From Octopus bimaculoides (taxonomy: Eukaryota), in NCBI RefSeq assembly GCF_001194135.2, contig NC_068982.1:67261316-67309338 (forward strand): a stretch of DNA of 48,023 bases. The letters run 5' to 3'. The notes under the pieces are model-generated. The model was not told the DNA's origin. It worked only from the letters and a program-made list of their open reading frames with translations, and did no database searches. A program made the position numbers and the translations under genes. This document shows, piece after piece, positions 7,757-43,149 of the stretch. How positions within the stretch are numbered: the first letter of the stretch is position 1; each line of letters opens with the position of its first letter.

Positions 7757-8326
7757 CTTAAGATGTCTCGCTGTGATGTCCTTGCATAAAGAGATCTCTT
7801 TCTGGGACAAATCCACATTAGATAGTGGGTAAATAACTTCTCCAATAATTTCATCTCTTGAAAACTTGTCAAAGCTGAGAACCACAAAGTGAAGGATAAT
7901 ATCTTCAAGTTGGTTATAGTCAACTCCATAAAAGGTGAAAGTTTCATCGTAGACTGGGTTCAATGTCTTTCTGAGAATTCTGGTTTTACGCTTGTATTTC
8001 TTCTCAGGCAGAAGCTGGAGTTTGATGTAAGGGTCACACACAGCAATTCCTGGTACTGATGGATTGAGGTCTGATGCTTTTAAAATGGTGACATGAAGAG
8101 CATTTTTCTTTGAATCATGCTCAATCGAAAAGTCTATGTTTCCAAGGTAAGGAACTTTTGCAGCTGGTGAATTCTGAAATTTCTCAAAAGCCCCATCATA
8201 TTTCTCGTTTTCATATTCAAAGTCTTCTTTGCAACCAAAGGCCTCATAGAGATACTTGCTTTTCTCAGACATCCCTTCTAAGTCCTTGTCAGTTCGTCCC
8301 CAATAATCTCCACTTGATGGACTTAC
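7757..8326 (-). CDS. SYT4: Second, diverged Syt4/11-type C2A exon with short linker and no TM (copy B)
   Basis: 570 nt open frame (190 codons) from cctag|GTAAGT to CTTAAG|GTATTT at 7757/7756. C2A is 102/130 aa identical to copy A, with many third-position silent differences and no stops or frameshifts. In-frame stops at 8327-8329 and 8345-8347 bound it upstream. The 5' boundary is uncertain; a possible start codon is at 8272. Confidence 0.82.
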
Positions 8327-9921
8327 CTAGGTTTTAAAAGGACACTAGTGTGATCTCTGATGCTTAAAACAAATAACACAATACAATAAAACAAATATTT
8401 TAACCCTTAATCTATGTCTAAAGTTATTGCTTTAAGAATTTAGCTTTGTAGACATGAAAATACCACCAAAATTAACAATTAGTTTAAAGATATTAAAATA
8501 TAGGAGACAATTATATAATAGAATAGTGAACATTAAATATTCTGTGTAGATATATTTGTGATGGTGTGCTTTGTGTATGCTTGGTGAGTGTTTTTATTTG
8601 GCTTTTTCCATGTGAAAAGAAATACATGAGTAAATAAATATTCCCACGTTATCAAATTGGTGCTGTTATATAGTGCCAGAATATAGATCAATAGATGACC
8701 AGTTGTTGAGAACAGAAATAAGCAATGAGAAGTTTATTGGGCATTTCTAATTGAAGAGAAAATTGATAAAATGCAAGACTTCACATCCAAAGAGGAAGTA
8801 GCTGACCCTAATCTGTTATGTATGTATGTGTGTGTGCGTGCATGTGTATGTGTGTGTGTGTGTGTGTGCATGTAAATATATATATATGTGTAAAGGTAAG
8901 ATCAATCTTGGTGGTGCCACATAAAAAGCACTCAGTCCACTCTATGCGGTGCTTGGTGTTAGGAAGGACGTCCAGCCATAAAAACCATGCCAAAACAGAC
9001 ACAGTAGCCTGGTGTATCTTCTACCAGGCCAGCTCCTGTCAAACTGTCCAACCCATACCAGCATGGAAAACAGAAGTTAAATGATGGTGAAGATGATGAT
9101 GACGATGATGATGATTATATATATATAAATTTTAAGGTATGTATTTGTACCAGGTCAAAAAACAGCAGTTAACACATTCCTACATCACTCTATGATGAAA
9201 ATAATACATGCTGAAAAAATTTGTATTTTGTATTTTAGTATTTCCTGTATGTATAGTCAGATGTATGACTGCAACAGATAAATTCAGAGCTCCATGTCAT
9301 GTATCACCATCCAATCTACTCCCAGTTATGTGGCATGATTAACATAATGTAATAAAGTGTTCCCCTGAAGAATTGTTGTGGATCTGCATCCAAATGCATT
9401 ATGACCACCCACTACAGAGGATACAAATAACCACAATGACAAAACATATTTAGGGAACAAATGGTACATGCTGCATCTTCTATTCATCCCACTTTTTCCT
9501 ATATTATCTTTTATACAGACTATTCACAACAGGAGTGGCCAACTTTTAAATTAAAGATCAAGATGACATCATAACTTTAGCTATACCTGTAGTTATACAT
9601 AATAATAAAGTAAATTTAAGTAAACTCAGTTCAAGGAAGAGATTTCATTACTGATATTAGACTTTTGAGGTGTGAGGTTGCTCATGTGTTTAAATTCTGT
9701 TCTTCCATACTAGTGCAGCTTGGATGAGAATGTATTTGAGACAGGATTTCATGACCGGATGCTCTTCCTGTTGTGAACACTTGCCCACTTTTTTTAAGTT
9801 GGGGATTTTTCTGATCATCAAAAGTACAGACCAACTGGTCATAGAGCCAAGAAAAAAAATGTAAACATCATTCATGCACATTCATTTACATACACACACT
9901 CACATACAGATACATAGATAT

Positions 9922-9955
<34 letters not shown>

Positions 9956-9956
9956 G

Positions 9957-10010
<54 letters not shown>

Positions 10011-10640
10011 CATACTGGAACCCAAATTTTATCTCATTTTTTCAACGTCTTGGAGCTCTAACTTCCTTTATTTATAGCCAATTATTATTTTGTTTGTTAT
10101 CTTTTATACAAAAGGAAACATCACTTATGTTGATATTTAACAATACTTATATACTATATTGTATATTTTATGTTATTTATTATGCAATGGTCATCTTGTA
10201 TAATGATCATATTACAAAATGACAGTGTTATATAATTGGTACATTACACAATAGCCATATTACATAATGCTTATAAAGTTTTGTTTAAAATTTATATTAT
10301 TACATAATATTCATAAAGTTTTATTTCATAAAATGATGCTACAGGTAAGTCAAAGATTGCAGGTACCCCAGTATCATCTAGAATTTGAGCTTGCAGTGTT
10401 GAAAATTAAAACCCATAATGCTTTCTTCAGTGTGACTTTCTTGGTATATTTTGAGTTTCCTTTCCTGGCATAACACCACCTGCATCATCAACAACAGACA
10501 CAGCCCAGAATATACCATCGTGTAGGTGTGGTTGTATTTCAGGTTCAGTCCTACTGCATGGCACCTTCAGCAAATGTCTTCTCCTGTAGCTTTGGGTCAA
10601 TGAAAGCCTTGTGAATGGATTAGGTAAACTGAGAGTTCAT

Positions 10641-40248: not shown

Positions 40249-40865
40249 AGCTTATAATACAAATATATTATAGCTTATAATATAAATATATTATAGCTTA
40301 TAATATAAATATATTATAGCTTATAATACAAATGTATTACAGTAAGCTATTATGTAAATGTACTTTAGCTTGGTGCTTTCAGTATTCTACGAAGCTTTGT
40401 TCTCATACCTCATTTAGGGCATGCTCTCACATTGATATTTCTAGCATGGATCTCTCCATGACCCTTTGTGTTGTAGCCAATTGATGTTCCTCTTTCTTTG
40501 TAGTTGCTCGCCTCTCACTTGTGTATAAGACTGCAAATGTTGAGTAGCATTCAAGAAATCAGAAAAGGTCACTTGAAAAGCCTCCAAGATAATGGAAAGA
40601 CAATTTAGTTAAACAATTTGGGACAAGATAGAAAAGAACGATGCAACCAAGAAAGAACTGGAAGTGCTTCATATTATACAAACAAGAAAGTAATTTTCTG
40701 AACACAGTGTTGCTGTGAAAACAGCATTAATATTGGGTATCTTACCCTTATAAGACAAAAAAGTTGCTGGGAGAATACTGAAAGTGCAAAACTATTGTAT
40801 ATTTACATTATAGTTTTCTGTAATACATTTGTATTATAAGCTATAATATATTTGTATTATAAGCT
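40249..40865. mobile_element. Fold-back element with long inverted arms containing 23-bp tandem units
   Basis: Left arm 40249-40389 has four TAGCTTATAATAYAAATATATTA-type units. Right arm 40771-40865 is the reverse complement with two units. Confidence 0.65.
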
Positions 40866-41886
40866 TTGTGGAAATGGCTGTCTGCTGGCCACCTTTTCCA
40901 TCTTATAAGAGTAAAATACCCAATCTTTCTGCTGTTTTCATGGCTATACTGCATTCAAAATATTACTTCCTTGTCTGTATATGAAACACATTCGATGCTT
41001 CCAAAAACAAAAAAAGTTTGTTTACATATGTAATTGGAAGTGAATTGTGACAGCAGTGTACAACAACATCTGGTCAATACAGTGATTGCAACTTAATAAA
41101 CTAAATTACAAAAATGAAAAGAAATTTTGAAATTTTTTTCTTATTTTCAGTGCTTTCATTGAAAATCAGCTCAACAAAAATTACTGTTATTTATATCTCA
41201 TTGCTATTAAAATTTGAAAAGAAATGTTTTCAATAGGAGCTAACATTTTTAAAAATATAAACAATGATGTTTTTTACTGTACTAATTGCTTATTTGTTAT
41301 GTAACATTGCTGTTACTTGAAGTACTGCACTTCATTAAGTTTTGATACAGCAGTATATATTGTAATACAGTAATGTTGCAATAAAAACAGTATGCATTTA
41401 TCTCCAGTTCACTGTAATGACTTATGTTTAAAACAGATATTTTAAAGAGCTAACACACTCCTCAAAAACCATATTCAAAAGTGTGATTCTTTTTAAATTG
41501 ATTAATGCGTAGATATTAAGAAAAACCTTTCTAAATCCGAGATTATACTATTAATCCATTGTAATACTATGTTTCAGAAGCAGAGAAATAACTAATTAAT
41601 ATTTGACTAATTGCTACAAGACCACTCATTAATCAATGGTCGATTGAATTTATCCCAGTGTTTATTTTATTAATTCTGGAGGGATGAAAATCAAAGTGGA
41701 TCACAGAGATATTTGTATAGAGAATAAAGAATATTGAACTGAAATTCTTTTAGACTTAGGCTCTACTCTTTCTGCTACTCCACTGCTTTAGTATATTCCA
41801 TAAATATGCATATATATGAAAAGATAATTGTTTGTTTATGTGTGTGTGTGAGTGTGTGTATGTATGTGAATGTGAGTGAGTATATG

Positions 41887-41959
<73 letters not shown>

Positions 41960-42316
41960 CCATGCATGTGCCTGTAGCAATAAGTGCAGAAATTAAGAAT
42001 TGCTTTTGCATTGCTATGCTGCAATGTGTTAGAATTTGGTAAATTCTTCATTTTAGTTATAAATTTTTTATTTTCATTATTTAAGAAAAGAAGATGATTC
42101 TTTAGGTAATTGCAGAAAATATAGTTATCTATTGAGTTGATAATAATAGTAATTATAATAATAATGTGCCTGGAATTCTGTAACATATTTACCAAAAAGA
42201 ACCTAGTTAAACACATAAAAAAAATGAAAATGTCACCAAAAAATACCAGCCAAAAGTGCAATACTTTCTCTAATCTAATTGCATTCCAAATAGCAATAAG
42301 AAAAGGAGTCAAATAC

Positions 42317-43149
42317 CTTGAGATGTCTTGGTGTGATGTCCTTGCACAAAGAGACTTCTTTCTGTGACAAATCCACAGAAGACAGAGGGTAAACAACTTC
42401 TCCAATGATTTCATCTCGTGAGAACCTGTCAAAGCTGAGGACAACAAAGTGAAGGGTGATACCAGCTAGTTGGTTATAGCTAATACCATAGAATGTGAAT
42501 GTTTCATCGTAAACTGGATTCAGTGTCTTCCTGAGAACCCGAGTCTTGCATTTGTGCTTTTTCTCTGGAAGCAGTTGCAGTTTGATGTATGGGTCACATC
42601 CTCCTATGCTTGGATCTCTCGGTGGAAGCTCTGAGGCTTGCAAGATTGTCACCAGCAGAGCATTTTTCTGAGAATCATATTCAGTTGAGAAATGAAGTGT
42701 TCCAAGATGCTGTGTTTTCAAGTCATCTTCATGTTTCTCTCGCATACACTCATCCTTCTCAGGTGTTGCACCGTCTTTTTCATTCTCGATACTATACTCG
42801 GCTTTCACATGGCCTGGGTCAAATTGTGATGGAAGGGGGCCTCCCCCTCCACCACTTGTCCCACTACCACTGCTTTGGCCCCTCTCGGCAAGACTTCCAC
42901 CAATGTGCTCACCCGAGGAAGGATAGGTTGGGCTTGTTGCTTTAGATTTCATGATAACTTTTCGAGCTGAGGACGTCTTTTTCAAGTTTCCATTATTGCT
43001 CTCTTTCAGTCCCTTCTTAATGGCTGAAGAGAGTCGATTCTGTGCATTTTTGGCCAGCTGTCTTTTGTAGCATTTATAAGCAATGGCTGTAGCTGTACCA
43101 AACATTACCATGACACCAAAGCAAACTCCAAAAATAGCACTGGTAGAAA
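42317..43149 (-). CDS. SYT4: Synaptotagmin-4/11-class gene, large exon encoding N-terminal TM helix, Gly/Ser-rich linker and C2A domain (copy A)
   Basis: T-rich acceptor tttcag|TTTCT at 43150/43149 (phase 1) gives xSTSAIFGVCFGVMVMFGTATAIAYKCYKR, a hydrophobic TM followed by a Cys/basic stretch. C2A motifs CDPYIKLQLLPEKK, KTRVLRKTLNPVYDETFTF and LSFDRFSRDEIIGEV, with the Asp-to-Ser third ligand typical of Syt4/11. Donor CTCAAG|GTATTT at 42317/42316 (phase 0). The provided ORF reads through this donor into intron. The symbol denotes the family; orthology is not tested. Confidence 0.93.

Follow-up and report, generated by a model that had tools for sequence, protein, structure and literature searches.

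A candidate in-frame C2A cassette downstream of the C2A exon of a Syt4/11-type synaptotagmin gene in two cephalopods

Syt4 and Syt11 are non-canonical synaptotagmins, whose role is thought to lie in the modulation of vesicle release and trafficking and not in that of the main calcium trigger, and they are considered here in cephalopods, which are already known for diversification at the level of RNA. The subject of this work is a stretch of 48,023 nucleotides (nt) from the genome of Octopus bimaculoides (contig NC_068982.1, positions 67,261,316 to 67,309,338; 34.7% G+C, ten runs of N), to which we refer as the window. The gene in question reads on its minus strand, where an exon coding for the transmembrane (TM) segment and the C2A domain of a Syt4/11-type protein (exon A) is followed far downstream by a second C2A-coding open frame (copy B). 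In a survey of the synaptotagmin family, the variants of Syt4 homologues were found only at the N- or C-terminus or, in chicken, between C2A and C2B, with no case of a duplicated C2A, and mutually exclusive exons that alter a C2 domain were described for invertebrate Syt1, Syt34 and Esyt2 (Craxton 2010, PMC2823689). A further related system is provided by recursive-splice exons, which were first shown for the microexons mI and mII of Drosophila Ubx and now comprise many annotated vertebrate exons, and where the competition between a regenerated donor and the donor of the exon itself decides between skipping and inclusion (PMC8605326, PMC6224609).

Exon A corresponds exactly in content and phases to exon 2 of canonical Syt4 and shares with Syt4 and Syt11 the serine in loop 3 of the C2A domain (LSFDRF), whereas the locus differs from theirs by an additional conserved exon, consisting of a linker and a C2A domain, that resides within the intron following exon 2. 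With the duplicated exons of Syt1, Syt34 and Esyt2 it has in common that a single gene has acquired a second version of a C2 domain by tandem exon duplication and that both copies are under selection. Unlike those exons, which are equal in length and phase and are swapped, copy B is truncated, lacks a TM segment, could be used only in addition to and after exon A and is found 34–68 kb away from it. The locus is of the Syt4/11 type, as had been proposed in an earlier sequence-only reading of the window. Both copies contain the motif VLSFD(R/K)FSRDE, whose alignment to VYDFDRFSKHD of Syt1 reveals the replacement of an aspartate by serine in the Ca2+-binding loop 3, and the best named relatives of exon A are a synaptotagmin-4-like protein from Haliotis, a synaptotagmin-11-like protein from Mizuhopecten and synaptotagmin-4 from Aplysia, with identities of 59–63%. 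A full-length orthologue of 432 residues with the architecture TM-C2A-C2B (P0002) is encoded in RNA-seq contigs, one of which originates from larvae of Sepia esculenta, and in a tblastn search of the window it matches exon A with 86% amino acid identity (residues 16–289) and copy B with 58% (residues 93–289). The Sepia mRNA contains 49 nt of coding sequence from exon 1, which therefore ends in phase 1, and the last codon of exon 2 is codon 289, giving a phase-0 end. The first two bases of exon A complete a codon, after which the exon codes for STSAIFGVCFGVMVMFGTATAIAYKCYKRQ… with the TM segment, for a linker and for a C2 domain. The TM segment, AIFGVCFGVMVMFGTATAIAY, was assigned by reading of the sequence and not by a TM predictor, and it precedes a stretch of basic and cysteine residues (KCYKRQ). 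The acceptor of this exon is strong (ttttatgtttcag/, with the slash here and below marking an exon boundary).

The C2 cores of both copies share 102 of their last 130 residues, and their DNA is 78% identical over 384 nt. Within this core, 56 differences are synonymous and 35 nonsynonymous, corresponding to proportions of synonymous (pS) and nonsynonymous differences (pN) of 0.64 and 0.12. Both segments are recognised as C2 domains by Pfam, with 86 bits for exon A and 82 bits for copy B, and the AlphaFold model of copy B contains a confidently predicted β-sandwich core whose closest structure is the C2A domain of human Syt4 (1ugk). The encoded proteins end with …ITPRHLK in exon A and with …ITARHLK in copy B, and RHLK is in either case followed by GTATTT in phase 0. 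At the opposite end, the homology of B to A begins at …SPTYPSSG…, about 70 codons past the TM segment, and the open frame of B is closed upstream by an in-frame TAG at 8329–8327. We have thus re-observed the features on which the sequence-only reading was founded, which are two C2A exons on the same strand with a common phase-0 donor, numerous silent differences between them and an intact second copy.

With copy B as query, we found an orthologue (P0121) on the same gap-free contig of 208,404 bp in ENA (ERZ21867824 ctg118984l) that also contains the orthologue of exon A (P0003). The contig belongs to a Sepia-like species that is close to Sepia esculenta, with exon 2 DNA being 92% identical, and distant from the species of the window, as reflected in the saturated pS of 0.72 between the A orthologues. 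In this contig, A and B reside on the same strand, with A upstream and B 67.6 kb downstream. None of the ten runs of N in the window touches A or B, but nine are located between them and one downstream of B (3747–4286), and the order and distance of the two copies in the window consequently rest on scaffolding. The equivalent order and strand on an independent gap-free contig support the linkage of A and B independently of this scaffolding, and the misjoin that the sequence-only reading had named as potential refutation is thereby contradicted. At 570 nt (window) and 582 nt (Sepia-like species), the length of copy B is a multiple of three in both cases. An exact look-up of the open reading frame (ORF) of the window's copy B in public assemblies returned no record, the entry P0001 is a 1.4-kb unspliced contig only, and a scan of JGI metagenomes for further orthologues of B gave a single irrelevant match of 45%.

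A comparison of nonsynonymous with synonymous change, as had been suggested in the sequence-only reading, indicates that B is not neutral, since its two orthologues differ in their C2 core by a pN of 0.18 at a saturated pS of 0.83 (pN/pS about 0.2). The two halves of this core have distinct histories. In the first half, the B orthologues differ by a pS of 0.90 and a pN of 0.22, and A and B of the same species by a pS of 0.75–0.81 and a pN of 0.15, with the saturation of synonymous sites between A and B arguing against a recent conversion in this region. In the second half, the pS between A and B within a species is only 0.44–0.47. Neighbour-joining trees agree with this division: for the first half they unite the two B copies (76.5%) and the two A copies (95.5%), and for the second half they group the copies by species (85–88%), which points to an old duplication and a later gene conversion by which the 3′ half of B became more similar to A. 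The motifs KKYK, TRILRK and KEIS are common to both B copies and absent from every other Syt4 sequence examined. The linker of B is poorly conserved yet open over 61 codons in the window and 64 in the Sepia-like species, for which the chance probabilities are 0.043 and 0.019. In the Sepia-like copy, the conserved motif ENEK precedes the first in-frame ATG, and two short out-of-frame ORFs in turn precede this ATG; both features imply that B is read from upstream, as an internal exon. The possibility that B is a pseudogene or dead copy is contradicted by the intact frame in two species and by the pN/pS of about 0.2. The substitution patterns show that B has been kept by purifying selection since before the split between the lineages of the window species and Sepia and that it evolves faster than A, and they make it very probable that B is a functional coding exon.

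The region upstream of B displays a pronounced conservation of its own. In neither species is there detectable similarity between the 300 nt upstream of B and the TM-coding or 5′ part of exon A. Across species, 81% of the positions are identical in an alignment of 127 columns that covers the intronic block in front of B and roughly the first 27 nt of the exon, although synonymous sites are saturated at this distance. The score of this alignment, 45, compares to 21.9±3.0 in shuffled sequences, none of which (0/300) reached this value. The block ends with TTTTAAAACMTAG/GTAAGY and thus contains stops in all frames, an AG and, as first bases of B, the consensus of a 5′ splice site. About 24 nt before this AG, the sequence GAT(C/T)ACA can be read as a candidate branch point, with a single intervening AG at a distance of 5–6 nt from it. 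In a rough position weight matrix, built on human frequencies and only indicative, AAG/GTAAGT scores 8.5, AAG/GTAAGC 6.9 and AAG/GTATTT 1.45. The intron upstream of B is 34 kb long in the window and 68 kb in the Sepia-like species, and the one downstream exceeds 7.7 kb and 10 kb, respectively. A conserved hairpin was not found at the B junction (consensus energy -2.9 kcal/mol), and long-range pairing between the intron downstream of A and the block upstream of B was no better than in shuffles. The junction resembles recursive-splice exons by the 5′ splice-site motif following the acceptor AG, the conservation of the junction, the very long intron, the greater predicted strength of the regenerated compared to the own donor and the preservation of the frame upon inclusion. 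It differs from them in the size of B, which with 570 nt codes for an entire folded domain instead of the 51 nt of a microexon, and in a polypyrimidine tract that is weaker than in the ratchet points of the fly. The conserved junction, the very long intron and the asymmetry of the donors all fit a putative recursive-splice exon. As a separate observation, the distance between TTTTAAG and TAG/GTAAGY is exactly 36 nt in both species (8327–8362 on the minus strand of the window; 9824–9859 in L001), with two conserved in-frame TAGs. These 36 nt could constitute a conserved poison microexon that makes alternative use of the same GTAAGT.

The C2B domain follows C2A in the orthologous mRNA of Sepia esculenta (P0002). 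In agreement with the sequence-only reading, which had noted no C2B between the copies or at positions 1–7756, a tblastn search with P0002 (E<=100) did not reveal C2B-like sequence elsewhere in the readable window, and residues 290–432 only cross-matched both C2A copies. No C2B was found within 10 kb of A or B on the Sepia-like contig. When the C-terminal 56 residues of C2B were used as query, nine short ORFs from other taxa were retrieved, none of them on ctg118984l, and these fragments point to a start of the last C2B exon near LDWDR. The C2B of the gene in the window presumably lies beyond window position 1, and it is formally conceivable that a C2B exon is contained in one of the larger gaps (163–540 N).

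We favour the reading that B serves the same gene as a cassette exon, which would lead to a TM-C2A-C2A′-C2B isoform, and for which we estimate a probability of roughly 45%. In this scenario, an ancient tandem duplication with breakpoints in the linker of exon 2, about 70 codons past the TM segment, and in intron 2 would have placed a copy of the distal linker, the C2A domain and the donor into the long intron between the C2A exon and the C2B exons. If B were spliced in after exon A and before the first C2B exon, the arrangement TM-C2A-linker′(61 residues)-C2A′-C2B would result, with the junction between A and B reading …CTCAAG/GTAAGTCC… or …CTCAAG/GTAAGTCCATCAAG… (peptide RHLK-VSPSSG) and the junction between B and the first C2B exon reading …CATCTTAAG/TT…. 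The skipping of B would yield the canonical TM-C2A-C2B protein, which is the sole form seen in Sepia RNA. Upon the joining of A (…AAG) to B, the sequence AAG/GTAAGT (AAG/GTAAGC in the Sepia-like species) would be regenerated, a donor that is stronger than the AAG/GTATTT of B itself. B might thus behave as a recursive-splice exon, in the manner of mI and mII of Drosophila Ubx: it would be recognised but in most cases spliced out again in a second step, and would be kept only under repression of the regenerated donor. Such recursive splicing would explain why the canonical mRNA, in which A is joined to C2B, dominates in Sepia larvae. More tentative is the specific proposal that cephalopods generate a three-C2 Syt4 by the regulated inclusion of a conserved, domain-encoding recursive-splice exon of 570 nt. 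Such a product would resemble E-Syts, MCTPs and ferlins by its three C2 domains on a membrane anchor but would differ from them by the absence of an SMP domain or other hallmarks of these families, by C2 domains that are all of the synaptotagmin type and by the origin of the third from an exon duplication within Syt4. The sequence-only reading had mentioned a three-C2 protein as a further option offered by the symmetric 0-0 exon; its compatibility with the frame has stood, and it has become the leading hypothesis, at the level of sequence. A third decapodiform transcript contig of Syt4 (L007, from Logan SRR27666080, 1171 nt) has a frameshift of 1 nt that is probably due to misassembly, and it stops exactly where exon 2 ends (…PRHLK). 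This end is compatible with a branch of the assembly graph at a splice junction and does not separate the intron from B.

Several observations weigh against the inclusion of B after exon A. Homolog searches retrieved neither a transcript nor a protein containing B, the contigs of Sepia esculenta pass straight from C2A into C2B, and a search with B among 50%-representative proteins, carried out with no length limit, did not return a three-C2 Syt4 of about 620 residues. To our knowledge, no classical synaptotagmin with three C2 domains has been described. In copy B of the window, residue 91 (codon at about 8056–8054) is a valine in place of a loop-1 aspartate, equivalent to Asp 172 (D172) in Syt1, that is nearly invariant in C2A domains of Syt4 and is present in copy A and in the Sepia-like copy B. 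The polypyrimidine tract at the acceptor of B is modest, several AGs precede this acceptor, and a stronger-looking one, consisting of a T-rich tract and ttttaag/, is located 36 nt upstream, where its use would add in-frame stops. The octamer AGGTAAGT is by itself not rare, with three occurrences in the window compared to 1.46 expected, and the searches of the window and of the Sepia-like contig did not locate the C2B exons relative to B. The failure to detect a product of B has to be viewed in light of the searches. The word-indexed protein searches return hits of about 0.7–1.75 times the query length (with maxima of 485 residues for a query of 277, 331 for 190 and 97 for 56), and a protein of about 620 residues could thus not have appeared in them. 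Since the libraries searched cover the window species poorly and do not even contain its canonical Syt4 mRNA, the missing transcripts of B are weak evidence.

The requirement of B for an upstream partner in phase 0, for which exon A is only one candidate, leaves room for an internal-promoter isoform or a nested gene, where an unseen first exon in the A-B intron, either with a phase-0 donor or as part of a 5′ untranslated region, would be spliced to B. The resulting X-C2A′-C2B protein would be devoid of a TM segment or equipped with a different N-terminus and could use shared or own C2B exons. Synaptotagmin variants without a TM segment occur commonly among invertebrates, where they arise either from separate genes or through splicing (PMC2823689), and the absence of any three-C2 protein from the representative search counts in favour of this scenario. 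When the 34 kb of the window were compared by blastn and tblastx to 20 of the 68 kb of the Sepia-like interval, with its central 48 kb outside the comparison and thus available to such an exon, only A, B, their immediate flanks and microsatellites were retrieved and no other conserved coding block. The A-B interval contains CpG-island-like patches only in association with repeats, this scenario offers no reason why GTAAGY is conserved where B begins, and a start at B's own ATG is unlikely in the Sepia-like species in light of the two upstream ORFs and the position of ENEK. We consider an upstream exon of this kind rather unlikely. It is improbable that A and B are tandem paralogous genes with a C2B each. 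Such an arrangement would place the C2B of A in a gap or in unread sequence, for which the nine gaps between A and B, those of 292–508 N being large enough for an exon of about 290 nt, and the reading of only 20 of 68 kb in the Sepia-like species provide space. This explanation conflicts with the nature of B as a partial copy of exon 2 without TM segment or upstream homology and preceded by stops in all frames, with gaps that coincide with microsatellites, repeats or unmerged overlaps, and with the gap-free contig, where there is no C2B within 10 kb downstream of A and where the query with the C2B C-terminus found nothing.

The mutually exclusive use of A and B in front of a shared C2B is equivalent to the interchangeable C2A modules preferred in the sequence-only reading, and with identical donors and donor phases and a precedent in the C2-altering exons of invertebrate Syt1, Syt34 and Esyt2 (PMC2823689) it has some initial appeal. 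It is nevertheless hardly credible at this locus, where a transcript joining exon 1 to B would read GT AAG TCC … TGA and, in both species, run into a stop some 12 codons later, with loss of the TM segment. The phase 1 of exon 1 against the phase 0 of the B acceptor and the confinement of the TM segment to A thus leave the notion of interchangeable modules unsupported, and the unequal length (833 vs 570 nt), the separation by 34–68 kb and the lack of any detected RNA pairing of the selector and docking type point in the same direction. Exon A also does not contain a credible, conserved internal donor in phase 0 that could rescue the frame. Its strong donor-like site at 42911–42912 on the minus strand (CGG/GTGAGC, CAG/GTGAGC in the Sepia-like species), which is conserved at the codons PSS-G and located 7–8 codons past the start of the homology to B, is in phase 1 and thus incompatible in frame with the acceptor of B. 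The conservation of this site may simply reflect a coding constraint. Finally, B could be untranslated and serve as pseudo-exon or decoy, either as a pure recursive-splice exon or via the 36-nt poison microexon, with its frame upheld by repeated conversion from A. The clustering of the 3′ half by species does indicate conversion, and the succession of a T-rich tract with ttttaag/, 36 nt and TAG/GTAAGT resembles a well-defined microexon that is conserved in both species. However, the linker and the 5′ half of the C2 domain have not undergone recent conversion, with saturated pS between A and B, yet their pN is just 0.15–0.22, and the B-specific residues are common to both species. Cryptic recursive exons are moreover normally short, out of frame and internally poorly conserved (PMC8605326), and a purely untranslated role of B is in our view very improbable. 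Among these possibilities, the inclusion of B as an in-frame cassette after exon A is the one that we prefer, and the features on which it is based are compiled in Table 1.

Table 1. Positions of exon A, copy B and the flanking splice elements in the window
Feature	Position	Strand	Properties
Exon A (Syt4 exon 2)	42317..43149	minus	TM segment, juxtamembrane linker and C2A; 833 nt; acceptor phase 1, donor phase 0
Exon A acceptor	43150..43181	minus	polypyrimidine tract and CAG (tttcag); kept in both species
Exon A donor	42311..42316	minus	GTATTT (CTCAAG/GTATTT); weak compared to the 5′ splice-site consensus
A-B intron	8327..42316	minus	about 34 kb; 9 assembly gaps; many microsatellites and SINE-like repeats (SINE, short interspersed nuclear element)
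Conserved intronic block upstream of B	8327..8420	minus	T-rich tract, GAT(C/T)ACA, TRTCMTTTT, AAAACMTAG; stops in all three frames
Juxtaposed 3′ and 5′ splice sites, AG/GTAAGT	8321..8328	minus	cctAG/GTAAGT in the window, catAG/GTAAGC in the Sepia-like species; ratchet-point architecture
Copy B open frame	8326..7757	minus	570 nt, 190 codons; linker and C2A′; phase 0-0
Copy B linker	8144..8326	minus	61 codons; diverged copy of the distal juxtamembrane linker; ENEK motif kept, with synonymous differences
Copy B C2A′ domain	7757..8143	minus	last 129 of the 190 codons of B; Syt4-type LSFD loop; B-specific KKYK, TRILRK and KEIS
Copy B donor and downstream intron	7722..7756	minus	CTTAAG/GTATTT and about 35 nt of conserved intron, CTCRTTCTTC...TTTTRTAG; partly co-duplicated with the exon

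The interval between A and B is otherwise dominated by repeats. Its nine gaps sum up to about 1.9 kb of N. Two gaps of 10 N, at 15341–15350 and 29484–29493, are flanked by identical sequences of 20 nt (atgactcaatacgtttagcg) and 55 nt and thus represent unmerged contig overlaps instead of missing sequence, and the remaining ones are located at microsatellites or SINE-like repeats. Dispersed SINE-like families of 150–340 nt, which are relatively CpG-rich, are found throughout the intron and in some cases adjoin gaps. Two such repeats, at 14810–15105 and 24180–24487, are 89% identical, and related copies are present near 1578–1915, 8949–9113, 12339–12493, 20277–20589, 22850–23084, 34173–34410, 36072–36296 and 46111–46647. 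Microsatellites of the types (CA)n, (TA)n, (GA)n and (CAG/CAC)n are abundant, as for example at 21130–21496. Shortly after exon A, the intron contains an inverted pair of 94-nt repeats with 88% identity (40295–40388 and 40772–40865) and a spacer of about 380 nt. The two arms may constitute the terminal repeats of a small transposon. Past copy B, the same intron also contains an ORF of 155 residues on the minus strand (3006–3473) that matches RVT_1 in Pfam (E 1.7e-08) and is probably a fragment of a retroelement of the non-LTR (long terminal repeat) class. A search against Rfam gave no matches. Across the entire window, the observed-to-expected ratio of CpG is very low, with a median of 0.17 in windows of 400 nt, which suggests heavy germline methylation of the gene body.

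The retention by selection of an additional C2A module in Syt4, in two cephalopods separated by a deep divergence, would add a new route to the diversity of synaptic proteins. If B were included after A, the resulting architecture would be undescribed for classical synaptotagmins, and it would provide the first member of this group with three C2 domains. If this inclusion were controlled at the regenerated donor, the locus would offer the first whole folded domain that is toggled by resplicing and a clear case, in a non-model organism, of recursive splicing that acts as on/off switch of a protein domain.

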